Source of the DNA: Phaeosaccion multiseriatum
Taxonomy: Eukaryota; Protista; Ochrophyta, other classes
DNA length: 64,000 nt
NCBI GenBank assembly: GCA_965112735.1
Contig: OZ218964.1
Coordinates: forward strand, 1,364,001 to 1,428,000
Direction: 5' to 3'
Below, piece by piece: positions 1 to 64,000 of the stretch; position 1 is the stretch's first letter; every line of letters begins with the position of its first letter. The notes beneath the pieces were generated by a model. It saw nothing but the letters and a program-made list of their open reading frames with translations. It was not told the origin of the DNA and made no database searches. The translations under genes and the position numbers were made by a program.

Positions 1-1510
1 TCTTGCCTTCTTCTTGACAACGCCTCGCCACCATCATCACTGCTTCTTCTTGCCCCCCGCCTGCCCTCATCAATCCCTCCGCCACGCCGCCCTCCTTTCA
101 CGCCTCCTCCTGTTGCTGCTGCCTCACCAAACAACACCGGCGCAACTCCTTCTCCTTCGGCGGCGGCACCCATGTTAACGCCCATATACCCTTCTTGCTT
201 TTGCCTGGGCTGCACCTCCTCGTGTTGTGCTATCCGCTGCTGCTCTCCCAGTTGCAGCTGTATCACCAACTGCTGTTGTTGCTCCTGCTGCTCCTGGTCC
301 TGCTGCTGCTGATGGAGCGAAGGAAAGAAGCGCTGCCGAGCATCCGCAGCCGCCGCAGCAGTTGGTGATATAGCAGCAGCTGGTGGCAGGCCGACGCCAA
401 AAGCGGCGCCCCTCTTACCCTCAGGCCCACCCCCTGCTGATAATGTATCACCAACTGCTTCTGCTCCCTTACCCTCCCTGACCTCGGCCACAAAGCGCAG
501 AGTGTCAAAGTCGAGGTTGCCCAAACCCTGCTCATACATCTGACGAGTAAGCATCTCCAGAGACAGAGAGGAGGAAGAGGCTGCACACGCAGCAATGGCC
601 ATGTGGTAAGTCGTCTGTGGAGGAAGTCAGGCAGAGAGAATGGGGGGGGGGGGTCGGAGAGGGAGAGGGGGGGGTCAGACAGACAAGAGAGAGGGGGAGA
701 GAAAGAGGACTCAGAGAGAGAGGGGGGAGTTCATTGAGAAAGAGAGGGGGGGAGGCGGGGGGTCAGGGAGACAAGAGAGACAACAGAGAGAGGGAGAGAG
801 AGAGAAAGAAAGAGGGTTCAGAGAGCGTGGGGGAAGTGTTCAGAGAGAGAAAGAGGGAGGGGTCAGAGAGACGAGAAAGGGAGAGGGGGAGCGTCAGTCA
901 TGCCAATTCTTACCATATCCGGCGTGACGTCATCCTTTTCCATGACGTTTAAAAGATCAAGCGCCTTGGCCCGCTGCCCACACCTGCCTAGCGCTCCAAT
1001 GGCGGCGTTGTACGCACTCACTGCAGCCGGAGGGGGCACGCTACCTTCCCCTCGCATTGTGTCCAACACATCCAGAGCTGCCTCCCATTGCCCGCCCCTG
1101 CCGCACGCGTCGATGGCCGAGGTGTAGCAGTAGATGTTGGCAGGGACGTCGTCAACATGCATACTGGCATGGTGGGGGAGGGGGAGGAGGAGGAGGAGGA
1201 GGAGGAGGAGGAGGAGGAGGAGGAGGAGGAGGAGGAGGAGGAGGAGGAGGAGGAGGAGGAGGTGAGGTGAGGAAAGACAGGAGGGGGGGGGTGGGAAGAC
1301 AGAAGGAGAGGGGAGGTGAGCCGAAGAGAAGAGAAGAAGGAGGTGAGCCTCTAACAAGTCCTCAATTTATAAAGCATGCATTCAAACACCCCCCCCCCCC
1401 CCCACATACACACGCACACACACGCACACACACACACACGCACACACGCACACACACACACGCACACACACACACACCACACACACACACACCACACACA
1501 CACATATATT

Positions 1511-1563
<53 letters not shown>

Positions 1564-1802
1564 GCCCTCACATGTCGAGTAGGTGCAGGGCCTTGTCGGG
1601 ATTCCTTGCCCTTGCGCAGGCATCGATGGCGGCCCCGTACGTCTCTGTGGACATGGCTTTGGGCCAGCGGCGGCGACACTCGTCCAGGAGGGAGAGAGCT
1701 TGCTTGAAGCCTTCGCTGCGCCCGCATGCAGCAATGGCGCTGCTGTAGCAAAACTGCAGGCGCAGAAGCAGTTGAGAGAGAGAAAGAGAGAGAGAGAAAG
1801 AG

Positions 1803-1837
<35 letters not shown>

Positions 1838-4800
1838 GGAGAGGTGAGAGAGGAAGGGAGGGGTTGGGAGGCATCCGTTATACTCCGCCGGGCTCCACCC
1901 AACCAGCTCACTCCACTCACTCACGCACTCACTCACTCTATCCCGCTCCACTCACTCACCAACTCATTATTCCACTCACTCATTCACTCACTCCACTCAC
2001 CTGCGTGGGAGCAAGGTGTTCCTCCTCCTCCATCCTCCTGAGCAAGTCCACCGCCACCTTGCCCGACAGCGCCTCCCCCTGGCGGGCACTCTCCGCACAC
2101 GCAGCTATGGCACATGCGTAGCTCGCTTGCGTAGGTGACGGCATGTCTCTCGCATTCCTCCTCCGCCCCCTTCCACCACCGTGACCACTATCATCACTCC
2201 TATAAGTACTACTACTACTACTACTGCTGCCGCTGGTGGTGGTGGTGCTGCTGCTGCTGCTGTCAGCCTGTGAGTGGTGCATGGAGTCCAACAGGGCCAC
2301 CGCCTCGTCCCTCCTCCCTGCCTGTGCGCATGCCCAGATGGCGGTGTTGATGGCTACGGCGTCGGGGGAGGTGTTAGGGTGGCGCTGCATCTCTCGCAGG
2401 AGCCGCAGTGCCACCTTCCACTCCCGCGCCTCTGCGCAAACCTTTTGGGTTGGTTGGATTTGGTTTGTGGGCCAAAGAGGGAGAAGAGGATAAGAGGATA
2501 AGAGGAGGAGGAGGAGGAGGAGGAGGAGGAGGAGGATAGTGCGAAGGGTGAATGATAGGAGGTGAGAGTGGTGTCCCTAGCGGGCGCAACGTGTAAACGC
2601 TCTCTCTCTCTACTCAACCTCTCTGCTTCACCTCTCTGCTTCACCTCTCTGCTTCACCTCTCTGCTTCACCTCTCTGCTTCACCTCTCTGCTTGACCTCT
2701 CTGCTTGACCTCTCTGCTTCACCTCTCTGCTTGACCTCACTGCTTGACCTCTCTGCTTCACCTCTCTGCTTCACCTCTCTGCTTGACCTCTCTGTTTCAC
2801 CTCTCTGCTTCACCTCTCTGCTTCACCTCTCTGGTTGACCTCTCTGACCTCTCTGCTTGACCTCTCTGCTTGACCTCTCTGCTTGACCTCTCTGCTTCAC
2901 CTCGCTGCTTGACCTCACTACTCACTTTGATAGCATTGGTGAAGCACTCTCTATCCGGCTCTAGGCCCGCGTCCACCATCTGCCTCAGCAGCTTCAGCGC
3001 CGCGACGCTGTCCTTCCCCTGAGCCAAGATGGCGCAGCCGTAAGAAAATGCATCAACCCCCAGACCCTTGCGTCTGCGGAGGGAGAGAGAGAGAGAGAGG
3101 GAGGAAGGAAGGAAGGGAGGAAGGAAGGAAGGAAGGAAGGAAGGAAGGAAGGAAGGAAGGAAGGAAGGAAAGAAGGAAGGAAGGAAGGAAGGAAAGCAGG
3201 GCTGAGGGGGGGGGAGAGCCTGTAAGGGAGTTCGGACGCTCGCGGCGTGGAGAGCCGAGAAGGGAAAAGAGCAAAAGAGGGGCGGCAGCAACACAACTTC
3301 CTCGATCGTCACGGTCATGAAAGCCCTATCTTCTCTTTCTTCTCCTCTCCGTTCTCCCTTGGCGTCCTTCCTGCCTGCCGTCCTCCCTCTCTCCTGGTTC
3401 TGCTCCCGTGACCCACCCACCTCATCTCCTGCAGCAGATTGATCGCTTGGCTGGCGTCTCCTGCCTGGAGAATACATGAGCAGCAGCAGCAGCAGCAGTT
3501 GGTGATACAATAGCAGCAGGAAAGGGAAGCTTTTTACAAAATGGACAGACGACGAGGCAACGCGTGAAGAGAAAGGATGACGACACCCCCACCCTCACCA
3601 CACGCACCCACACACGCACGCACGCACCTTGGCACATGCGTCCACAGCCCCGTTGAAGCAGTAGATGCTCGGCGGTAGGCCCCTCTCGTCCTCCATCTCC
3701 CTGAGGAAGGAGAGGGCATCCCCCACCCTCCCGTCCTTGGCCACGGCTGTGATGACGCTGCTGTACACGTAGGAGTTTGGAGGCACACCAGAGCGCTTCA
3801 TGTCCTCCCACACCTGCAGGGCCAGGTCAGAGCGTCGAGCGTCTGTACGGTGTGTGTGTGTGTGTGTATGTGTGTGTGTGTGTATGTGTATGTGTGTGTG
3901 TATGTGTGTGTGTATGTGGATGTGTGTGTGTGTGTGTGTGGATGTGTGTGTGGTGGGTGGGCGTGTATGTATGTGTGTGTGTGTGCGTGTGTGTGTCGTT
4001 GTAGAGGATTGAGTGAGGGACAAGGGGGTGAGCTCAAGTGCAACCCGCCGACACGACATAAAAACGCAGCACCGAAAGAGAGAGAAGCAGTCAAAGTGAG
4101 CGGTGCTTGTGGTGTGATGGGGGTGGGTAAGTCTTATGTAAGTCTTACGTAAGTCTTACGTACAAGGCTTATCTCATCATCTCACAAGCCACCATCCTGC
4201 CCCCGTACCTGCCAGCGCTCCGAGTACGGTGGAGAAGGAAGCCACAGTGGGCGTCACCCCCGGGGGGCCCCCGCCTCCCACCCTCCCCTCCATCCTGCCT
4301 CTCCTGCTCCTGTCGCCGCCTCTGGCTCCTTGGGCTCCTCCCCCTCCTTCCTCTTCTTGCCGGTGTGGGGCAGCGCCCGTCATCTCCGACAGCAGTTTGA
4401 CCGCGACTTCCCACTGCCCGCCTTTCTTGCACGCAGCCAGGACCTGTCGTGAAACGGTCGGAATCAGCAGGTGGCGCTTGCTTGCAGAGAAGTGATGATG
4501 GAACACAGCGATGAGATCGAACACTCCTGAATCGATGCAAAGCTCGCAAGCCCGCCCTGTCTGCCTTCACCCCTGCGCTGTCCTGCCCTTTGTCCTGCTC
4601 GCCTCCTCGCTCTCTCCCCCTCCTTCCCTCCCTCCCTCCCTCCCTCCCTCTTCTGCTTCGCCTCCTCCACCCCCACCTGATCGTAGCTGAAGGCATTGGG
4701 CCAGAATGGTCCAGCCTTCATCTTTGCAAGCAGCTCGACGGCCCTCTCCCACAGACCTGCTCCCTTGTAGGCTCTTAGCGCTGTGGAAGAGACAAAGCGG

Positions 4801-5474
4801 AGGCCGGGGGGGGGGGGGGGGGGAGGAGGAGGAGGAGGAGGGAGGAGGGAGGACAGACTTTGAGCAACTGGTCTCCTCCTCCTCCTCCTCCTGCTCCTCC
4901 CCAGGACATGCACCAAAGAATCATGATAGCACAATCAACTTGGTGAAGACACGCAAATGGGCGCAGCGCAGGGCGGGATGGGTACTGCTCATCTCTCGGT
5001 CCATTGCGATACGATAAAAATCCTCTCCCTCTCTCCGGCACTGCCTTGGCACCACCTACCCGCGTTGCACGCGTACGTGGAGCCTCTCTCCCCCTTCTCT
5101 GGGAAGAACATGCCCCTCACGATGTCATCCACATCCCTCCAGCGGTGGCGTCTGCTGAGGTCTTCAATCTTGCTTTCCACTGAGGCAGGACGGGTGTTGG
5201 GCTGCTGCTGCCGCGGAAGAGGGCGCTTCTTCCCAGCCACGTCGCCAGTATAGGCACGCATAGACTCCGGCCGACTCCTCATGCCGCTGCTACTGCTGGT
5301 AGTGGCTGTCTGCCGCCGCTCGTGGCCGAGTGGGCTGCCGCATCCCTTCCAATAGCGCACTCCCTCTCGCTGCTGGTGTTGCCGCTTGCGGGCCGGGGCT
5401 GTCTGGAAGGCACAGACACGGCCACAACCACACAGGGCTGCCACCGCAACCCCTCTGGCTGCTCTTCCTTTCAT
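1..5474 (-). CDS. Multi-exon pentatricopeptide repeat (PPR) protein, probably plastid-targeted; 3' end runs off window start
   Basis: Spliced PPR motifs in exons ~5060-5474, 4678-4780 ([26 protein letters not shown]), 4208-4443, 3628-3843 ([28 protein letters not shown]), 2926-3073, ~2000-2440, 1571-1755, 914-1163 ([28 protein letters not shown]), ~482-614. N-terminus [27 protein letters not shown] resembles a signal peptide + AF motif. Alternative ATGs at 5525/5534. Confidence 0.88.
2617..2916. repeat. Intronic 13-bp minisatellite (CCTCTCTGCTTCA/GA)n
   Basis: About 22 tandem copies visible inside a PPR intron. Confidence 0.95.
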
Positions 5475-5785
5475 TTTCTTGCCGCTCACGGCTCTTGAAG
5501 CAGTCGCGATAGTCGCCCCAGCCATGGCCGGCATCAAGTGCCATCTGCCCCCCCCCCCCCCGATTGATTGATTCAAACTCGGACCAGAGTGGGGAGCGTT
5601 TATCAAAGGCAAAAAATGACCAACAAACGCGAAAAGGTGACATCGAAGACCTATAAGAGCCCCATCATTCAGCTGTGTCGAATGGATGTCAAGCGGAGGT
5701 GACAAGCGCCTGTCAGAGACTATCCAGCTTTTGAGATTTGAACCCCAATAGGTTGCCCTCCCCAGCCCACTCCAGCCCATTCTAG

Positions 5786-14913: not shown

Positions 14914-17283
14914 TCAGTCATTTGTGCTGGAGATGATATCCGCCAGGGTCTCTAGCGAGTTGCTGCTCCTATGGCAATTGCCTCCCCTGTCGTGGCCTCC
15001 TCTTCTCTCCCCCCCCCCCCTCTGCTGCTGCTCCTCCTCCGTTCCGTCTCTCATCGCTTCCGTCGCCGCCGTCGGAGTGGGTGGAGGGGCGACAGAGGTG
15101 GCGGCGGCGGCGGCGCTTGTACCTGATGTAGGTACCGGTGAGGAAGAAGTAGGAGAGGAAGAGGAAGAAGAGGAAGAAGGAGAAGAGGACGGAGACGCCC
15201 CACGACCTGAGCCTGCACCCACTTCGCGAGCGCCGGGGGGTGACATACTGTTGCGGTTGCTGTTGCTGCTCTCACGGACGGACGTGTCCTTGTCGCTGCT
15301 CTTGTTCCTGTTCATGCCTTCACCGCCGGTGTTGCTGTTGCTGTTGTCGTCGCCATCCCGGGGGGGTTTGGTCGTCCCGCCGCCTTCGGAGCCGCCCCCT
15401 CCGCCCCCCCCTCCCCCCTCACAATGCATAGGCTCCACTCCTCTGCCTTGCCCCTGCCCTTGCCCCTGCCCCTGGCCACCGTACTGCCCCGACCCGATGC
15501 CGCCGTATTGGCCTGCCTGCTCTCGCAGGAGAGGGGTGAGGATCTGCTTAAAGTCCGCCTCTGTTAGAGAAGACATGTCCCTGACGTGTTTGTGCCCCTT
15601 GCGCTTCTTGGCGGGCTCGCCTCCCCCCACCCCTCCTCCTCCTCCTCCTCCTCCTCCTCCTCCTCCTCCTCCTCCTTCTCCTCCTCCTCCTCCTCCCCCC
15701 AGCCCGACCACCGCGTCCATTGCACCGGTATCGTTGATGGAAGGCATCCTGTGGTGACTGGGAAAGCCTCCTACCCCACCCACCCCCCCTCCCATTGTGC
15801 CGTATCGGTCATAGCGATGCGCAGGAGGTATGCGTGTATGCCCTTGCTCCTGCATGGACGACGCGTGCGCCTGCTGCCCGAAAGGTGGTGGAGAGGCCAT
15901 GTGTTTGTCATCTTCCGGCGGTTTGAACACTGTGCAGCTGCTGCTCAGGGGCGCTCGCTGGTCGGAGGAGGGGCCATTTGGAGGACCAGTTTGGTCCATG
16001 TCCATCCCACTGGGAAACGCCATGCCCCGGGGCCCCACCCCACCTTCCCGGAGCTGGTGCTGCTGACGCTGGTGCTGCTGGTGCTGGTGTTGAGACTCTT
16101 GCTCGTAGATATGCTGCTGATGTTGCTGATGCGGGTCGAGGTGATGGCTGTCGGTCGAGTACAGCTGTTTGCTATACTCTCCAGTACTCACATTGACGTC
16201 AGGGTCTGTCTTCATGTACTGACTGCTCTGCTTGTCGTTGCCCCTGCTGCCGCTGCTGTCACTGACACCACTGCCAACCCCGAGGTGGCCATCGCGTCTG
16301 TCCTCCTTCGGCTGTGGAAGGAGGTGATACGCCCCTCTCGGTCCTGGGACACTGCCTCTCGGCGAGTTGCTCATTGAGCTTAGTATCCTGCTTGCTGATC
16401 CAGACTGCCCCTCATAGGGGGAGGGATGGGCCCTCTTGTACCCCCTCCTCGCCGCCTCTGCTTCAAACTTCATCTCGTCTGCGGTTTGCCCCTGCCCTTG
16501 GTGCCCACTTGAGTGGTGCATGAGGCGGGGGTGCTGGGGGTGCTGGTGTGAGTGTTGGTGGTGCGGCTGCTGATGCGACTGATGCGGATGCTGCTGCGCG
16601 GGGTGGTACGGAAAGGCACTGTGAGAAATTGGCCCGTGTTGCGACGGCCCTTGCGAGCCTCCATACCCCTGCGGCGTGTGCTGCTGCGTGTGCTGCTGCT
16701 GTTGGTGTCGGTGCGACTGCGGCGGTGGCGACTGCTGGCCATACGGCATACTCACTGGCGGCATGGACCCGGTCATACTCGATCGCTGCGTTGACCTTTC
16801 CTGCTGCTGCGAGGACCTTTCCTGCGGCGGCTGCGAAGGCGAGGGCCTCTCCTGCTGTGAGGCCTGCTGGGAGGAGGAGGAGGCCCTGTCCTGTTGTTGT
16901 TGTTGTTGTTGTTGTTTTTGTTGTTGTTGCTGTTGCTGCTGCTTTTGCTGGGAGCTGACATGATGAAAGTCGTCTGGCACCGACGCGTGGCGCTTGCGAC
17001 ACTGCAAGATGGCGCTTACAGGCATACCCACGAGCTCCTGGTTCAGATATACCACCTTGGAGAATTGGCTAAGGCGGCCGCCGCTCGTTTTCTTGAACCC
17101 GTGATAGTTGAGCTGCCGCTGGAAGGACGCCCAGTTTCGATGGCGAAAGTGGCGACTGATGCAACTCTCCAGCTCCTCCAGACCGGCCTCGAAAGTCACG
17201 GCGCCATCGTTGTAGCACATAACCTTCCCGCCCTTATTCTCCTCGAGCATGGCCACTAGCTTGGAGGTGAATTGCGCCGTCAT
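14914..17283 (-). CDS. HSF-type DNA-binding domain transcription factor, intronless, Q/H/G-rich tail (789 aa)
   Basis: N-terminal FTSKLVAML...HFRHRNWASFQRQLNYHGFKK matches the HSF DNA-binding domain core; single long ORF. Confidence 0.9.
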   Translation of the reverse strand: MTAQFTSKLVAMLEENKGGKVMCYNDGAVTFEAGLEELESCISRHFRHRNWASFQRQLNYHGFKKTSGGRLSQFSKVVYLNQELVGMPVSAILQCRKRHASVPDDFHHVSSQQKQQQQQQQQKQQQQQQQQDRASSSSQQASQQERPSPSQPPQERSSQQQERSTQRSSMTGSMPPVSMPYGQQSPPPQSHRHQQQQHTQQHTPQGYGGSQGPSQHGPISHSAFPYHPAQQHPHQSHQQPHHQHSHQHPQHPRLMHHSSGHQGQGQTADEMKFEAEAARRGYKRAHPSPYEGQSGSASRILSSMSNSPRGSVPGPRGAYHLLPQPKEDRRDGHLGVGSGVSDSSGSRGNDKQSSQYMKTDPDVNVSTGEYSKQLYSTDSHHLDPHQQHQQHIYEQESQHQHQQHQRQQHQLREGGVGPRGMAFPSGMDMDQTGPPNGPSSDQRAPLSSSCTVFKPPEDDKHMASPPPFGQQAHASSMQEQGHTRIPPAHRYDRYGTMGGGVGGVGGFPSHHRMPSINDTGAMDAVVGLGGGGGGGEGGGGGGGGGGGGGGGVGGGEPAKKRKGHKHVRDMSSLTEADFKQILTPLLREQAGQYGGIGSGQYGGQGQGQGQGQGRGVEPMHCEGGGGGGGGGSEGGGTTKPPRDGDDNSNSNTGGEGMNRNKSSDKDTSVRESSNSNRNSMSPPGAREVGAGSGRGASPSSSPSSSSSSSSPTSSSPVPTSGTSAAAAATSVAPPPTPTAATEAMRDGTEEEQQQRGGGERRGGHDRGGNCHRSSNSLETLADIISSTND

Positions 17284-26580: not shown

Positions 26581-28086
26581 TCAAGTGGGCAGTACTCCAC
26601 TCAGACTCCAATGTGTATTCGTGTGCGCCAAGACGACTCTCAGCCCCTGCACACCCGCTCCACCTTTGGTTTCTGTCCATGCCTCGTCGTCTATTGGGAT
26701 GGCCTCAAAGCAGATTTGTGCATGGGCCTTGGCGAAGAAAGTCACGCCTGCCCACATGCGTTGGGGAAGATCGTCGTCTCCCGAGGCAAAACCCGCCCCT
26801 TCCAGACACAGCACTAGCTGAGGCACGTCGGCGGGAGGCAGAGAGTACTTCTGCCCTGCGGTGAGCCGCACCTCCTCCATCTCAAAGTCTTCTATGGGTG
26901 GAGTGTAGCGTACCCGGGATGCGTCCATGGGAACTGGGGGCACCAGCGGTGGAGGGCCTGTCTTGTACGAGAGAATCTCGCACAGGAGGGGCACATCCCT
27001 GTACTTGGGGGTCAGGGCCACACGCACCACATTGTCGGACCTGGCCATCACCTCCAGCAAGTCCCCAGACAAATAGGCATGTGGCTCGTTGGCGGCCATG
27101 AAAAAAGACTCGCCGGGACTCATCCTCATGTAGTTGAGCAGCAGCGGCATCATGATGCCAATGTCCCCCGGGTACTCCTCATTGAGCCGCAGAATGAGAG
27201 TGCGCACATATGTGTCCTCTCTCTTGAACGCCGCCAACTTCTCCAGGCGCTTGGGATCATTCCTGCCAAAAATGTCCTCACTGAGCATGTCGTCGTCGTG
27301 CTCGTGCTCGTGGTCAGTTGTCTCCTCATCGGCGGACACGTCGTCTCCTCCGGCCCCCCGCACCTCCCCCTCCAGCTCCTCTGAGCCACTCGCGCTTACC
27401 CCACGCGCCCGTAATGCCTCGTCACGCAGCCTGCTGAGAAGGGCTTTGATTTGGTTCTGCACAGCGTTGGGCTTGGCCTTAATGTAGCTCCCAAAGAGCA
27501 GCCTCAGGGCCTGCATCTGCTCGTCCAAGCCCTTTGGGACGTCGCACACGCGCTTAACCGCAGACATGCTGACCAAACTTCGGAGCTCGGGGTACATGTG
27601 TAAGGCGTAGACAATTTCCTCAAAGGGTCTGAAGCCGCACAGACCCTCGAATTTCGTCAACGCCACGGCCATTTCGGGCTTGTGGTTGTCGTCCTTGTAC
27701 AAGTCAGGTCGCGTCGCGTACACCCGCTCTGCCGTGGCCTTGTCTGGGTGCGCCTGGATAGACAGGGCTTTGGCAATGCTCAGCACCTTGAACATGAAGG
27801 GCAAGTCCCCTTCCGGGCTGCCCGCCCTTCCCAGGTACTCGGGATGCGTCTCCAGCAGCTCAATCAAGAAAGGCCCCTTCCCCACTGCCCGAGGCGAGTT
27901 GGGGTTCTGCACCTTGAGCCGGCTGGGCCCGTTTGGGTGCGTGCCCATCCACAGCTCGGCATACTGCTGTTCGCCGTCAATCTCGAAGCGTCCTCTGCCC
28001 TCCGAGACCATGAGCTGCGCAACAGCACTCTCCTCGCCTGTCTTGCCCCAGGCATAATTCTGCGACGCGCAATCTAGCCTCCACAT
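26581..28086 (-). CDS. MPI: Mannose-6-phosphate isomerase (type I PMI), intronless
   Basis: QNYAWGK, YAELWMGTHPNGPS, LPFMFKVLSIAKALSIQAHPDK, YKDDNHKPEMAVALT.FEGLCGFRP, ANEPHAYLSGD, SDNVVR. Confidence 0.97.
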   Translation of the reverse strand: MWRLDCASQNYAWGKTGEESAVAQLMVSEGRGRFEIDGEQQYAELWMGTHPNGPSRLKVQNPNSPRAVGKGPFLIELLETHPEYLGRAGSPEGDLPFMFKVLSIAKALSIQAHPDKATAERVYATRPDLYKDDNHKPEMAVALTKFEGLCGFRPFEEIVYALHMYPELRSLVSMSAVKRVCDVPKGLDEQMQALRLLFGSYIKAKPNAVQNQIKALLSRLRDEALRARGVSASGSEELEGEVRGAGGDDVSADEETTDHEHEHDDDMLSEDIFGRNDPKRLEKLAAFKREDTYVRTLILRLNEEYPGDIGIMMPLLLNYMRMSPGESFFMAANEPHAYLSGDLLEVMARSDNVVRVALTPKYRDVPLLCEILSYKTGPPPLVPPVPMDASRVRYTPPIEDFEMEEVRLTAGQKYSLPPADVPQLVLCLEGAGFASGDDDLPQRMWAGVTFFAKAHAQICFEAIPIDDEAWTETKGGAGVQGLRVVLAHTNTHWSLSGVLPT

Positions 28087-31779: not shown

Positions 31780-32084
31780 CAGCTCTTCAGCGTGTTGTAC
31801 AGACAGCCTTGCCTTGTCTCAGCTTCACTATCGCCCAAGGGCCCAGCCAACCCAGCTCTTCAGCGTGTTGTACAGACAGCCTTGCCTTGTCTCAGCTTCA
31901 CTATCGCCCAAGGGCCCAACCAACCCAGCTCTTCAGCGTGTTGTACAGACAGCCTTGCCTTGTCTCAGCTTCACTATCGCCCAAGGGCCCAACCAACCCA
32001 GCTCTTCAGCGTGTTGTACAGACAGCCTTGCCTTGTCTCAGCTTCACTATCGCCCAAGGGCCCAGCCAACCCAGCTCTTCAGCG
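31780..32084. repeat. 73-bp tandem repeat x4 overlapping the SRP68 stop codon
   Basis: AGCTCTTCAGCG recurs at 31781, 31854, 31927, 32000 and 32073; units differ at one position. Confidence 0.97.
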
Positions 32085-34251
32085 AACCGCCTGCAGCCCC
32101 TGCCCCCTTCGGTGCCTGCCCCGCCTTCTCTCGGAGATCTGGGTACGCAATGTGGTTGTACGCCAGGTCCAGCAGCACTGGCTTGAACGGTATTGGGCTG
32201 GGGAGAGGAGGAACATTGGCAATGTGGAGATTTCCGTCTGCCCCTGGATTCTCCAGCACACCTTGCTCGATCCTCTCCAACAGCGCCAGCTGCGGTGCTT
32301 TCTCCACTCCCTCTCCGCCCCCACCGCCGCTGTTGCCACTGCTGCTGCTGCTGCTGCTGCTGCTGCCGCCCTTGTCCCCACCCCTGCCCTTGCCCTTCTT
32401 CCCCTTCCCAGTGGTGGTGACCGGCGTGTTGTTGTTGCTGCTGCTACTGCTGCCGGCGGTGGTGGCGGAGGGGTTGCTGGTCTTCCCCGCTGCCCTGCCT
32501 CTAATCTTGACCAACAGCGCCTGCGCCTGTGCCCTGCACAGCCCTCCCTCCACCCTTGCACTCAGTGCCTCTAGCTCCTGTCCCTGCTGCTGCTGATGCT
32601 CCTGCCCTCCGCCTTCCTCCTCCTCCTCCTCCTCGCCCCCGTCCAGTATTGCAAACAGCGCAGCAGCCTCCGCGCAGAGACCCTTGGCCCTTTCGTACAA
32701 GGCCGTAGCCTCTGCCCACTTGCCTTGCTGCTCGTAGGCAAGCGCCACGAAGGAGCACCGGGCGGCTCGGTAGCGCGCCGCATCCGCCTGGAGCCGCTCA
32801 ATCATGTCGTCATGTCCATCATCCTCGTCAAGATGGTCATGGTCGTCTTGGTCATTGTCATCACCGTCCCGACCCGTGCTCACAGCGACCCTCATGTCCC
32901 TTACGCCTTGCAGCAGGGCGTCGTAGATGTGAACAATGTCCGCCGCAGGCACCACCGCCCCTCCTGCCGCTGCTCCCACTCCTGCTGCTGCTGCTGCTGC
33001 TGCTGCTCCATCTCCTCCCTGCTCCCCTTGTCCCTGACCGCCCCCCTGAAACTCCACCACAAGCCCCTCGTTTCTCTCCCGCATCAAGGTGAGCTTTGTG
33101 TAGCTGGCGTAGGCTGTCAACAAGCGCAGCTCTTCTCGGAGCCCTTCCATCTTAGCGCCCCCACCCCCCTTGCCTTGGAGCTTAGCCAGCTCCTTGCCCA
33201 GAGTCACCAGCGCGTCATCGAAGGAGGCAAAGGTCTTGAGGTAGAGAGCCTCTCTCTCTTGTCGACTGCCTCGCAGCTCCTCGGCCGCTGATTCCGCCGT
33301 CGCGAGTTTCTTCTGTAACGCAGTACTTCTCACTGCAACTTTCTTTCCCCTCCAGTTTACATCGGGCAATGCCGAGGTCGAATCCAGAGCCATTGCCGAT
33401 TCGTTGTCCTTGCTGATGGCCGACCGGGCCTCCGCGTCCGCCAGCACAGCGTCCAGCTTGGACGCAATTAGAGCACTATCGACGACGCTACTGCCGCTGT
33501 CTTCGGCTTGCTGCTGATCTTGGCCACTAAGCTCAAGGTTACGGGCGCAAAAGCGCAGGATTGGCTTCAGCTCAACAGCGCGCTGCGTAAACACATCTTG
33601 CTCTTCGATGCTCCCCACCGTCCCAAGCTTCTCGCAGACATCACTCGCCACTGTAAAGCTCCCCAAAGCCTTACCCCACTCCATCTTTTCCATCATGAGC
33701 GTGCCAGAGAGCCACGCAGCGTATGCGTGGGCCTCTACAATTGTGCGATCGTTGGCAACATCCACACACAGCTCCTCCAACTTCCGCGCCCAGCTGCACG
33801 CCTTGGCAAGTCGACGGAGGAAATGGTGGTGCAGCGAAGCCTTCAAAGCACGCCCACCCTCCTCCCCTGTGTTCCCCCCTTCATCACCCACTTGCTGCTT
33901 GATCTCCATGCCATGACTCCAAGCCCTCTCGGCAAGGAATAGCGGGATCAACAAGTACTTTGATGAAGAGGATCCCGATGCGGTTGCCGCCTCTGCAGTG
34001 AGTTCTCGGGGCTGAAAGGCCCTCCCCTTCCCGTAGGTGTGTCGGATTCCCTTGCGAGTCCTCACTCTCCTCAGGCGCCTGGAGCAATATCGGTGGTAGC
34101 TTTCATGGCTGCCCTGACGAAGGCCGTTCTGGCCTTGTGCGAGCATGATAGTCTCGTGAATCTTCAGGCTCAGCAGGGGCCTGTTCTCCGCCTCTTCCTC
34201 CTCCCCAGCCCCCATGATTTCTCCTTGCGTCTCTCCTTTGCTTTCCTCCAT
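32047..34251 (-). CDS. SRP68: Signal recognition particle subunit SRP68, intronless (734 aa)
   Basis: AQGQNGLRQGSHESYHRYCSRRLRRVR, LLIPLFLAERAWSHGMEIK, HFLRRLAKA, VEAHAYAAWL.G, PIPFKPVLLDLAYNHIAYPDL, C-terminal SWVGW. Confidence 0.95.
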   Translation of the reverse strand: MEESKGETQGEIMGAGEEEEAENRPLLSLKIHETIMLAQGQNGLRQGSHESYHRYCSRRLRRVRTRKGIRHTYGKGRAFQPRELTAEAATASGSSSSKYLLIPLFLAERAWSHGMEIKQQVGDEGGNTGEEGGRALKASLHHHFLRRLAKACSWARKLEELCVDVANDRTIVEAHAYAAWLSGTLMMEKMEWGKALGSFTVASDVCEKLGTVGSIEEQDVFTQRAVELKPILRFCARNLELSGQDQQQAEDSGSSVVDSALIASKLDAVLADAEARSAISKDNESAMALDSTSALPDVNWRGKKVAVRSTALQKKLATAESAAEELRGSRQEREALYLKTFASFDDALVTLGKELAKLQGKGGGGAKMEGLREELRLLTAYASYTKLTLMRERNEGLVVEFQGGGQGQGEQGGDGAAAAAAAAGVGAAAGGAVVPAADIVHIYDALLQGVRDMRVAVSTGRDGDDNDQDDHDHLDEDDGHDDMIERLQADAARYRAARCSFVALAYEQQGKWAEATALYERAKGLCAEAAALFAILDGGEEEEEEEGGGQEHQQQQGQELEALSARVEGGLCRAQAQALLVKIRGRAAGKTSNPSATTAGSSSSSNNNTPVTTTGKGKKGKGRGGDKGGSSSSSSSSSGNSGGGGGEGVEKAPQLALLERIEQGVLENPGADGNLHIANVPPLPSPIPFKPVLLDLAYNHIAYPDLREKAGQAPKGAGAAGGSLKSWVGWALGR

Positions 34252-59682: not shown

Positions 59683-60412
59683 ATGATGAGAGGGGAGAGG
59701 AGAGGATGTATACTGGTGGGCCTGTGTGTGCTCACCTTAGGAGCGCAACACGTGACGGCCTTCGTATCAGTGCCTTCGAGGGCCTGCCCTGCTCATCGCT
59801 TCAGCCCCCCCCCTCTCCAGAGAAGCACCCCTCTTCACGCAGAAGCTACTGGTAAGACGACGCAAGAAGCTCTGACTACCATTCAGGAGGGCGTCAGCAC
59901 AAGAAAGGTGAGTCAAGTGCAACCAGCACACTCCTTCCTTCTTTCTCTCCTCCCTCTCCCTCCTCCCTCTCCCTCGTCTCTCTCTCTATACCTCGTCTCT
60001 CTCTCCTCCCTCGCCCTCTTCCTAATATATATATATATAAATATCTCTCTCTCTCTGTCTCTGTCTCTTCTTCGTGTGTATATATACCCGATTTATACCC
60101 ACATCCACCTCTACTCCACCTCGCCTCTCTCGTACCCTACGCCTGCTCAGGTCCCTGTGGGCCCCATGGTGGAGGCTTTGGATGTATTGCAGCAGCACGC
60201 AGAGGCCTCAGCCCTTAGCGTCGACGCTCAGAGCGTGGAAGGAGACTGGGAGCTCATCTTCTCCACACAACTCAAGAAGGTCAGCACTCAGTTGCAAGTC
60301 TGTGTGGCTATTCGTGTGCGCGATTCTGCCCGGCCGTTGATGATTAGGGGAAGTGCTGGTGCTCTGAATACAAATACATACACACACCTCTGAGTGCCAT
60401 CTATGCTGTTTA

Positions 60413-60443
<31 letters not shown>

Positions 60444-61048
60444 GCACCTTTGACCGCCATGCACCCACCATCACCATGCCCCCAACCAAACTAACCACTC
60501 ACACCAACCAACTCAAAAACGGCCCCACCCCACAGGGCTACATGCCTGTGTGCGAAATTATCGGATTCTACCCGTCCAAAGAGGAAATGTCCATCAACAC
60601 CACTGCCTTTGGCGGCTTTCTGTCGCTGGGAGGCATTGAGGGAGAGTGCCAATGGAACGACGGGCAGAACAAACTAGACTTCTCTCTTGGTAAGTACATA
60701 GTACACACACAACACGAACACACACTCAGTCTCTCTCTCTTTATCTCTCTCCCTCTCTCTCTCTCTCGCTCTCTCTCCCTCTCTCTCTTTCTCTCATTCT
60801 TTTATCTCTCTCTCCCTCTCTCTCTCTCTCTCTCCCCTCACCCCCCCTGCCCCCCCTCCTCTCCCTCTTCCTCTTCCCATTCTCGCCCAGACAAAGTGAA
60901 GATAGGCCCATTTAGCTTCAACAAGAAGGCCAAGGGCAAGGCGGAGCAGAAGAGTTACACCTTCTTCCACACCGAGCCCGGTCTGTTGTGCGCCAAAAGC
61001 TCTGCGGGATCCGTCTCCGTCCTCGCTAAGGAGGATCGAGCGGACTGA
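59683..61048 (+). CDS. Plastid-targeted PAP/fibrillin-like protein, 4 exons
   Basis: Signal CILVGLCVLTLGAQHVTAF-V; VEGDWELIFST; exons 59683-59907, 60151-60279, 60536-60689 and 60891-61048 ending SYTFFHTEPGLLCAKSSAGSVSVL. Confidence 0.7.
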
Positions 61049-61230
61049 CTGACTGACTGACTGACTGACTGCCTTGACTGACTGAGTGATCCGACTGAAG
61101 TGACTGACCGACTGACGGGCTGACCGACTGACTGACTGACTGACTGACTGCTTGATTGACTGACTGACTGACTGACTGACTGACTGACTGACTGACTGAC
61201 TGGCTGATTGCCTCACTGACTGACTGATTG
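61044..61230. repeat. (GACT)n tetranucleotide tract that supplies the stop codon of the fibrillin-like gene
   Basis: GAC TGA CTG ACT... begins at the last codon. Confidence 0.92.
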
Positions 61231-61601
61231 AACCTTCACAGCCACACTGTACATAGGGAAAGGAAGGGAAAGGGGGGAGGGAGGGAGGCAGGGATGGAAA
61301 GGGAGGGAGGCAGGCAGGGAGGGACGGAAAGGGAGAGAGGGGGGGAGGGAGGGAGCGGAAGGAGTTGATTTCCAGGGTCGATGAGCATCTAGTCTATCCT
61401 TCCAATTCGAACATCAGGAGGGACTTAGTGCTCATGTGTGTGTATACAGCGACTTTCCTTTCTTTCCTTTTGGTATTTACTACTCAATTCGATAAGAGCT
61501 TTTCTTCGCTAACTTCTCTTTTTGCTGACTTTTCTTCTGTGGGCCAGTGAGTGACCATGGAACGAACGTTCTGATGAGGAGGGCATCGCTCTGTCTACTG
61601 T

Positions 61602-62159
61602 GTGTGGAGTGGCGAAGGAGTGTCGAGTCAAGTGGATGAAAGAGGGCGTAAGAAGGGAGAAGGAGGAGGAAGAGGAAGAGGAGGAAGAGGAGGAAGAGGA
61701 GGAGGAGGAGGAGGAGGAGGAGGAGGAGGAGGAGGAGGAGGAGGCGGGGGTGCGGATGAAGTGGAGGCGGCGGGATACGAAGTGCTCGCTTTAGTGACGC
61801 CTCAGCGCTTGGCCAACGTCCTCAGCCAGCACGGGCGCCTCGACCCCGCCGATCCTGTCGCTTGTCGCGCAGTTCTCGCCGCCCTGCGCGATGACGTCCT
61901 CGCCGAATTAGACCTCGAGACTCGCAGCCTTGTGCTCGGCTCTTGTGTTGGCTACCGATGCGTTGACGCTGGCGAAGGTGGTGCAGGGAAAACAAAGCTT
62001 TTTCGCGTCGTGAACCGCGTCGGCAAGGAATTGATAGTCGAGCATGCGAGGGTGGATGCAAAGCTGGCCCGTGGAGCGCTGGCACCATCGACACCGACAG
62101 CACTGCGCCCGTTTACACCGCCTGCTCCGCCGCCTACTTTTGAGAAAACAGCTGAGTGA
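61602..62159 (+). pseudogene. ATG-less ORF fragment resembling the C-terminal domain of Rnl2-family RNA ligases
   Basis: EVLALVTPQRLANVLSQHGRLDP...AVLAALRDDVLAELD resembles the Rnl2 'YVTxNRLxNVxSKIG...DxxEE' helices (from memory). In-frame TGA at 61575 and no ATG; no KxxG motif seen. Confidence 0.4.
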
Positions 62160-62312
62160 AGAGAGGAAGGCCGGGCAGCCTTCGCCGTCAGCCGTGTTGA
62201 CGTCACACGGGCAGAGAACGTCACGTCAGGCCGAAGCTGCTGACACGTAAAAAGACAAAAGAACAAGAAAAAAATGTACATTGTGTGTGTGGCGAGGGGC
62301 TTGTCTCCACTT

Positions 62313-64000
62313 CTACTTCGTACCAGCGACTCGCATCACCACTCTCCCGGGGTGGTGTTTGTCTTCCCACACTTCGACTCCTGCTCTCTCCTGCAAGTAG
62401 GCCAGCACCACAGGCAGCTTTCCTCTACCTGTGAGGACGTTGATCACACTCTCCACCTTCGCTTCTGAGAGCACGTGACGAAGCGCTGCCTTGCCCGTTC
62501 CCTTGCCAACCCGTGTCAAGTCCATAAGCCTCCCCGGTACCACCCAGTGTTTGAACATCCCCCACGACACGGCCTCTGCGTACACCTCGTCAGCAGCCTC
62601 CTCGTCGCCGCCTTCCTGTAAAGCGTCAATAGTGGCGCTGTAGGTGAGTGTGTTGGGAACGAGTCCTTCAGCCTTCATTTCCCTGAAGAGCCCCAACGCC
62701 TCCACGTGTTGGCCGGCCTTGGCGCATGCATCAATGGCGGTGTTGAAGGTCCATACACCCGGAGGGGGTCCTTCGTCCTTCATCTCCCTCAACAAACCCA
62801 ATGCCTGTACGTGTTTACCAGCCTTGGCGCATGCATCAACGGCGGTGGTGTAGGTCCATACATCCGGAGCGGGTCCTCCTTCCTTCATCTCCCTCAACAA
62901 ACCCAACGCCTCCACGTGTTGACCAGCCTTGGCGCATGCGTTCATAGCAGCGTTGTAGCTCTTTACATCCGGAGCGGGTCCTCCTTCCTTCATCTCCCTC
63001 AACAAACCCAATGCATCCACGTGTTGGCCGGCCTTGGCGCATGCGTGCATAGCAGCGTTGTAGGTCCATACATCCGGAGCGGGTCCTTCGTCCTTCATCT
63101 CCCTCAACAACCCCAACGCCTCCACGCGTTCACCAGCCTTGGCGCATGCATCAATGGCGGTGGTGTAGGTCCATACATCCGGAGCGAGTCCTTCTTCCTT
63201 CATCTCCCTCAACAAACTCAACGCCTCCACGTGTTGACCAGCCTTGGCGCATGCATTAATAGCAGTGTTGTAGCTCCTTACATCCGGAGCGGGTTCTTCT
63301 TCCTTCATCTCCCTCAACAAACCCAACGCCTTCACGTGTTGACCAGCCTTGGCGCATGCGTGAATAGCAGCGTTGTAGCTCCTTACATCCGGAGCGGGTC
63401 CTCCTTCCTTCATCTCCCTCAACAAACCCAACGCCTCCACGTGTTGACCAGCCTTGGCGCATGCGTTAATAGCAGCGTTGTAGCTCCTTACATTCGGAGC
63501 GGGTCCTCCTTCCTTCATCTCCCTCAACAAACCCAACGCCTGTACGTGTTTACCAGCCTTGGCGCATGCATCAACGGCGGCGGTGTAGGTCCTTACACCC
63601 GGAGCGGGTCCTTCGTCCTTCATCTCCCTCAACAAACCCAACGCCTGTACGTGTTTACCAGCCTTGGCGCATGCATCAATGGCGGCGGTGTAGCTCCATA
63701 CACCCGGAGCGGGTCCTCCTTCCTTCATCTCCCTCAGCAAACCCAACGCCTCCACGTGTTGGCCGGCCTTGGCGCATGCATCAATGGCGGTGTTGTAGCT
63801 CCATACATCCGGAGCGGGTCCTCCTTCCTTCATCTCCCTCAACAAGCCCAATGCATCCACGTGTTGACCAGCCTTGGCGCATGCGTTCATAGCAGCGCTG
63901 TAGCTCCTTACATCCGGAGCGGGTCCTCCTTCCTTCATCTCCCTCAACAAACCCAACGCCTGTACGTGTTGGCCGGCCTTGGCGCATGCATCAATGGCGG
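62313..64000 (-). CDS. Intronless PPR-Smr protein with a highly homogeneous PPR array; 5' end beyond window
   Basis: At least 12 full 35-aa units (VxSYNAAIxACAKAGQHVEALGLLREMKEGGPAPD) plus a partial unit at the edge and a degenerate last unit; C-terminal MDLT..KAALRHVL..INVLTGRG..HPGRVVM is Smr-like; frame open to 64000. Confidence 0.93.
   Translation of the reverse strand, partial: AIDACAKAGQHVQALGLLREMKEGGPAPDVRSYSAAMNACAKAGQHVDALGLLREMKEGGPAPDVWSYNTAIDACAKAGQHVEALGLLREMKEGGPAPGVWSYTAAIDACAKAGKHVQALGLLREMKDEGPAPGVRTYTAAVDACAKAGKHVQALGLLREMKEGGPAPNVRSYNAAINACAKAGQHVEALGLLREMKEGGPAPDVRSYNAAIHACAKAGQHVKALGLLREMKEEEPAPDVRSYNTAINACAKAGQHVEALSLLREMKEEGLAPDVWTYTTAIDACAKAGERVEALGLLREMKDEGPAPDVWTYNAAMHACAKAGQHVDALGLLREMKEGGPAPDVKSYNAAMNACAKAGQHVEALGLLREMKEGGPAPDVWTYTTAVDACAKAGKHVQALGLLREMKDEGPPPGVWTFNTAIDACAKAGQHVEALGLFREMKAEGLVPNTLTYSATIDALQEGGDEEAADEVYAEAVSWGMFKHWVVPGRLMDLTRVGKGTGKAALRHVLSEAKVESVINVLTGRGKLPVVLAYLQERAGVEVWEDKHHPGRVVMRVAGTK
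62630..64000. repeat. 105-bp coding tandem repeat (PPR units), ~13 copies
   Basis: CATCCGGAGCGGGTCCTCCTTCCTTCATCTCCCTCAACAA recurs with 105-bp period (e.g. 63806, 63911). Confidence 0.97.

Follow-up and report, generated by a model that had tools for sequence, protein, structure and literature searches.

At the right end of the window analysed here (64,000 nucleotides of the Phaeosaccion multiseriatum genome, positions 1,364,001 to 1,428,000 of contig OZ218964.1), the minus strand carries a gene composed mostly of very similar 35-residue units. What kind of protein does it encode, and how did its repeats come to be so alike? The initial annotation had described a TALE-like, recombining PPR array fused to an Smr-like domain, and had seen in it a candidate reprogrammable RNA-targeting protein. 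The gene and its array were confirmed as real, and the claimed anatomy, a uniform and mosaic PPR array joined to an Smr-like domain, was right, the tail part depending on predicted models. The locus probably corresponds to the C-terminal 561 residues of a nuclear P-class PPR protein, single-exon as far as visible, which ends in a divergent Smr-fold tail and belongs to a multi-copy family; the functional part of this reading is a proposal. The host DNA is GC-rich (about 57%) and that of an intron-bearing eukaryote.

The open reading frame on the minus strand has 562 codons and runs in frame from position 63998 to a TAG codon at 62313–62315. The gene is cut by the window edge, its N-terminal part lying beyond position 64000, and the term "intronless" applies to the portion within the window (62313–64000). 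A 105-bp tandem array was detected by TRF at 62672–64000, with 12.7 copies, 88% matches, 0% indels and a score of 1944. Searching the ORF translation against Pfam returned PPR_2 (PF13041, E = 1e-141, 13 stretches) and PPR (PF01535, E = 7e-117). Together with the 105-bp period, these profile matches correspond to the tandem 35-residue helical-hairpin repeats of P-class PPR proteins, and a helix-turn-helix pattern was present in the predicted model. With each unit numbered canonically (V1 to D35), the gene is organized as follows, from the window edge to the stop codon and then by motif.

63912–64000, minus strand: partial PPR unit, positions 7–35 (in-frame translation from 63998).
62652–63911, minus strand: twelve full 35-residue P-type PPR units of 105 bp each, xACAK type (TRF, Pfam, unit table).
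62547–62651, minus strand: degenerate terminal PPR-like unit 13, forming a helical cap before the tail (helices H36–48 and H52–64 in the model).
62316–62546, minus strand: C-terminal 77-residue domain with a predicted divergent Smr fold (predicted structure, motif register).
62313–62315, minus strand: stop codon TAG (end of the ORF).
62514–62525, minus strand: MDLT, in place of LDXH (tail translation).
62421–62432, minus strand: TGRG, corresponding to the TGXG motif (directly after predicted strand 2).

The units showed a mean nucleotide identity of 87.4% (range 74–98%). They had been called near-identical down to their synonymous sites; they are indeed alike, but the synonymous sites are not identical, with variants in 13 codons and a pS of 0.201. 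Identity of 87% and a pS of 0.20 agree with the proposed recent amplification or homogenisation of the units. The overall pN among units was 0.105, giving a dN/dS of about 0.5. This deficit of pN relative to pS and the lack of indels in the array point to constraint on the scaffold, which would be under purifying selection.

The stretch is represented in five sequencing runs that come from two studies, all of them lacking an RNA label. On the 2.7 kb examined, 365–417 Logan contigs per run of sample S1 and 121 in X5 aligned at 97% likeness or more. Word depth was 49–490 in the unique flanks, and from position 62301 onward the summed word depth, which is not a copy number, was mostly several-fold to tens-fold higher. 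Downstream of the stop, at 62311–62372, the contigs branched into four or more different sequences. The tail is thus found in several genomic contexts, and the PPR-Smr gene is multi-copy. This is the outcome, from short-read contigs, of the search for paralogous copies that the initial annotation had suggested. Within the array the Logan contigs measured 60–140 bp and none spanned it, so the order of the units rests on the assembly alone.

These data bear on the possibility that the array has no specific function, being either a very recent expansion by slippage or unequal crossing-over, or an artifact of the assembly of a multi-copy sequence, in a copy which is decaying or unexpressed. The length of the ORF says little here, because one open unit makes all near-identical units open; the array is bridged by no contig, many paralogous contigs map onto it, and an RNA run is missing from the five runs. 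Against this stand a scaffold pN below pS, zero indels across 12.7 copies, and a cap unit and tail intact to a clean stop. Furthermore, unit-specific contigs from the two studies agreed fully with the window at many points. We consider an array devoid of function quite improbable.

The relationships among the units were those of a mosaic. Units 1, 5, 6, 7, 9 and 10 formed a type A (2–13 differences) and units 3, 4, 8 and 11 a type B (5–11 differences), whereas unit 2 was intermediate between the two and unit 12 was divergent. The sub-unit variants previously listed were all recovered, namely KHVQ in units 3, 4 and 11, HVD in units 1 and 9, KDEG in units 3, 8 and 11, and a terminal PG in units 2, 3 and 11. 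The four-gamete test found incompatibility in 78 of the 136 pairs of informative biallelic sites, and a PHI-type test on the units gave 0.390, the permutations averaging 0.486 (p = 0.01), in support of the proposed reassortment of unit segments. The distances between units were alike for neighbours and for distant units. Owing to this lack of an adjacency effect, tandem duplication of adjoining units is ruled out as the only process. The mosaicism fits an exchange of segments via gene conversion or unequal crossing-over.

The best matches of the whole protein were about 41% identical and belonged to dinoflagellates (Polarella, Symbiodiniaceae) and ochrophytes (Laminaria, Scytosiphon, Ectocarpus, Heterococcus), the top match, from Polarella, containing seven SACEK units. 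In PMC12787238 (citing Safonov and Berdieva 2025), the SACEK motif is attributed to P-class PPRs, including PPR-SMRs, from dinoflagellates, heterokonts and certain further CASH lineages, and the xACxK class is said to include proteins with many consecutive repeats of this kind. Positions 9–13 read [D/N/H]-A-C-A-K in every unit of the present array, a variant of SACEK; the differences from this description are that position 9 is not Ser, position 12 is Ala and a His stands in place of the downstream Trp. The present repeats are also far more uniform than those of these relatives. The amino-acid identity of adjacent units was 0.84 here, 0.58 at most in the relatives (the Polarella protein) and about 0.51 in three metagenomic relatives, with a median of 0.20. 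Repeat homogenisation is thus graded within the xACxK class, with the present gene at the extreme.

One of the relatives, P0004, contains a 105-bp DNA repeat (3.3 copies, 79%) and belongs to a tandem PPR cluster. It is located on a JGI metagenome contig, L001, where three or four PPR genes follow each other on the same strand (75–5667, plus strand), and it possesses xACSK units and an Smr-like tail with LDFH and ITGHA. The cluster indicates that clustered PPR-Smr genes exist outside the present genome.

The pairs of residues at positions 5 and 35 were, for units 1 to 12, exactly as first read: SD, NG, TG, TN, ND, ND, ND, TD, ND, ND, TG and NN. Variation had been described as limited to a set of positions including 2, 5 and 35. 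The enrichment at these three sites held up and the confinement did not, since 18 of the 35 positions vary. A pairwise amino-acid diversity of at least 0.5 was observed at 11 positions (2, 3, 5, 6, 8, 9, 16, 19, 29, 30 and 35). All three code positions are among them, and a mean diversity as high as theirs is attained by only 0.64% of the possible position triples (exact test, p = 0.0064). Eight non-code positions were as variable as the code positions. With three of the 11 strongly variable positions being code sites, the code sites are enriched but variation confined to 2, 5 and 35 is ruled out. The pN was 0.26 at the code positions, where pS was 0.12, and 0.088 elsewhere.

Could the specificity residues be driven by an arms race? 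In multi-copy P-class PPR clusters of the RFL type, as in the present family, code residues have increased variability and copies recombine with each other. Positive selection of this kind was reportedly described in angiosperm RFL clusters by Fujii and colleagues in 2011. By analogy, positive selection would track fast-changing or selfish organellar transcripts, as for restorers of fertility, and the shuffling of units would be adaptive and not a by-product. The pN at the code positions, three times that of the rest and above the local pS, and the significance of the enrichment are what such selection would leave, and the multi-copy nature of the family and the position of P0004 in a tandem PPR gene cluster go in the same direction. 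However, the signal is carried by three codons only, the eight non-code positions vary equally, and the comparison is made among units of one protein and not among orthologues or alleles. There are also differences from the RFL clusters, whose repeats are degenerate in DNA, unlike the present units, and whose proteins are not known to carry an Smr tail. We regard an arms race as unlikely; a by-product of recombination both within and between members of the family, by unequal crossing-over and gene conversion, would account for the uniformity of the repeats.

The same distribution of variable sites limits the comparison with TALE effectors. Both systems consist of almost identical units in tandem which recombination reshuffles, and in both the variable sites include the specificity residues. 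In contrast, the fold, the ligand (RNA here, DNA for TALE) and the type of organism differ, and the present units are less uniform. TALE-type variation is found essentially only at specificity residues, and here these make up three of 11 strongly variable sites. "TALE-like" therefore holds as an analogy for uniform, shuffled units, and fails on the eight equally variable non-code sites and the dN/dS of about 0.5. A resemblance was also found with the consensus or designer proteins cPPR and dPPR. They were the top structural matches of the PPR model (31–43% identity; Foldseek, VIA-align), natural PPRs being matched as well, and they are likewise made of uniform 35-residue units which differ mainly at the specificity residues. 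The present protein differs from them in being natural, in its Smr tail, and in varying at eight non-code positions too.

The code pairs allow a prediction of the RNA target. The first prediction left the TG and NG positions blank; its pairs were read correctly, and these positions can now be assigned from designer-PPR tests, in which TG recognises A, and NG either C or U (PMC6468296). With this code, derived from land-plant designer scaffolds, we infer that the twelve visible units read approximately G-Y-A-A-U-U-U-G-U-U-A-Y. The array would bind single-stranded RNA with one unit per base, its N- to C-terminal direction following the RNA from 5' to 3'.

The tail was much harder to place by sequence. 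A Pfam search with the tail alone, at E-values up to 10, gave no match to Smr (PF01713). PDB sequence searches with the tail or a two-sequence profile gave chance matches only, the word-index homologue search limited to the tail found none, the ESM Atlas feature search with the tail had no usable match, and neither of two metagenome scans, run with the tail profile and with the whole protein respectively, detected a relative. Exhaustive phmmer comparison of the tail with 1.84 billion representatives gave a single match (E = 2.5e-6), P0068, a short PPR protein sharing the tail pattern HW..PG..MDL...KAA.RH...LTG.G; a word-index search with the P0068 tail returned only P0068 itself. An alignment (A4) of seven tails, taken from relatives, showed the usual pattern of Smr subfamily 2, LD[FL]H ... 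IITGHA ... NKGR, with LD[FL]H present in P0004, P0013, P0015, P0017 and P0030. The tail of P0030 matched the Pfam Smr model at E = 1.2e-4, below the cut-off. Compared to the PDB, the A4 profile had only two matches, both to the Smr domain of NEDD4BP2 (E = 0.32 and 1.1) with the motifs in register, and the TGRG of the present tail was in register with ITGRG of NEDD4BP2.

Predicted structure did point to Smr, from tail models built on a two-sequence alignment and having a tail pLDDT of 55–80. Residues 75–145 of the model aligned to the Smr domain of Thermus MutS2 (2zqe) with a Z of 10.0 and an rmsd of 1.8 Å over 71 of 80 residues, and to that of Deinococcus MutS2 (4och) with a Z of 9.6 (both by VIA-align). 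By the same method, pTAC2/PAP2 chains from structures of the plastid RNA polymerase aligned over PPR and tail together (133–143 residues, Z 10.3–11.5). A tail-only model (pLDDT 66) was matched by Foldseek to 3fau, 2zqe, 2d9i and 4och with probabilities of 0.99–1.00 and TM-scores of 0.63–0.69, the E-values being only 0.07–0.11. Its best ESM Atlas match was a cluster annotated 100% as PF01713 (TM 0.73). From the predicted fold and the motif register, we classified the tail, as modelled, as a divergent Smr domain. The fusion of an Smr-like domain to the PPR array was thus upheld by the predicted fold, with TGRG and MDLT in register, and without a sequence-profile match.

The two motifs differ in their conservation. 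TGRG, directly after predicted strand 2, has the form of the TGXG of subfamily 2, whereas LDXH is replaced by MDLT, in which the Asp is kept and the His lost; neither motif of the tail contains a His. The replacement of DLH by DLT had been correctly noticed, and catalysis had for this reason been called uncertain. In SOT1 the motifs are LDVR and TGTG, TGXG being needed for RNA cleavage and LDXH for DNA cleavage (PMC6662315), and LDXH is kept in only two of the eight PPR-SMR proteins that Arabidopsis has (PMC3858433). Since SOT1 itself lacks this His and cuts RNA via TGXG, the loss of the His alone is no argument against RNA cleavage. The change of motif stands, and the statement that DLT makes RNA cleavage unlikely is ruled out on the same ground (PMC6662315).

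PPR-SMR proteins are known in heterokonts (PMC3858433). The present protein shares with those of plants (SOT1/PPR53, GUN1, pTAC2/PAP2, SVR7/ATP4) a P-class PPR tract that leads into an Smr domain at the C-terminus. It resembles pTAC2/PAP2 in that the predicted model aligns over both PPR and tail, and SOT1 (LDVR) in having a TGXG motif without the His of LDXH. In contrast to the plant proteins, its tail has diverged too far for the Pfam Smr model to match, its repeats are about 87% identical in DNA where those of plants are degenerate, and its genome contains many copies, compared with eight PPR-SMR proteins in all in Arabidopsis (PMC3858433).

The most likely reading is that of a predicted PPR-SMR-type protein which would bind specific RNA sequences in an organelle and comes from a multi-copy family whose repeats are kept alike by recombination. 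We propose that the protein acts in the mitochondrion or the plastid as a sequence-specific factor for RNA stabilisation or processing. As in plant SOT1, the Smr tail may cleave RNA close to where the array is bound, and it could equally serve as a docking module only, as in pTAC2/PAP2. Exchange of units together with changes at positions 2, 5 and 35 would generate paralogues with different target sequences. In the boldest extension of this model, the family would consist of sequence-specific RNA endonucleases reprogrammed by recombination, the exchange of units creating new specificities on a fixed Smr cutter, for use in nuclear-organelle conflict or against foreign RNA. This extension appears improbable to us.

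A dedicated role in defence or surveillance, with diversifying, sequence-programmed RNA endonucleases directed against viral or other foreign RNA, was the boldest reading of the initial annotation. The one point in its favour is that a modular RNA reader, a nuclease-type fold containing TGXG and numerous shuffled copies occur together. Nothing shows the protein to be a retargetable nuclease, nothing links the gene to defence, the catalytic His is absent, and the characterised PPR-SMR proteins all act in organelle gene expression (PMC3858433, PMC6662315). The neighbours, whose exact sequences are absent from a collection of 15 billion proteins, are of the housekeeping type:

32050–34251, minus strand: SRP68, single-exon (E = 2e-100).
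26584–28086, minus strand: phosphomannose isomerase, single-exon.
14917–17283, minus strand: HSF-type DNA-binding protein, single-exon.

With these points taken together, a defence function seems most improbable, and the organellar RNA-binding protein described above is the reading that we retain.

To direct proteins to RNAs of choice, engineers construct uniform PPR arrays. A family found in nature, with shuffled repeats about 87% identical in DNA and joined to an Smr domain, would show evolution retargeting PPR proteins, and could offer RNA tools both scaffolds and a compact Smr module. The gain from this single locus is small, as the gene is truncated at the window edge and is one further copy of the family.

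Other elements of the window were noted. A second PPR gene is present at 1034–3765 on the minus strand. Its units are degenerate, 40–50% identical to the uniform unit, and distributed over three frames, which fits introns or frameshifts; a search for the Smr-like tail in this gene gave no match. On the other side of the PPR-Smr stop codon, an ORF at 61602–62159 (plus strand) is convergent with the PPR-Smr gene, the two stops being 153 bp apart. It gave a weak match to the C-terminal domain of T4 RNA ligase 2 (PF18043, E = 7.6e-6, 26.6 bits for a cut-off of 27). The proximity of an RNA-ligase-like gene to a PPR gene of the nuclease type may be due to chance. The ORFs at 59683–61045, upstream of the ligase-like ORF, had no Pfam match.

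Three microsatellites, intergenic or intronic, were visible upstream of the neighbour gene: TC x53 at 60730–60834, GACT x46 at 61043–61231 and GGA x30 at 61656–61744. The contigs of all four runs break at 61651–61759. In the unique flank, single-base differences from the assembly were observed at 61511, 61865 and 61868 in X5 (second study) and at 61827, 61865 and 61868 in X1 (first study), X2 and X3 having no contig at the latter three sites. They may come from distinct strains or alleles, or be departures from the assembly.
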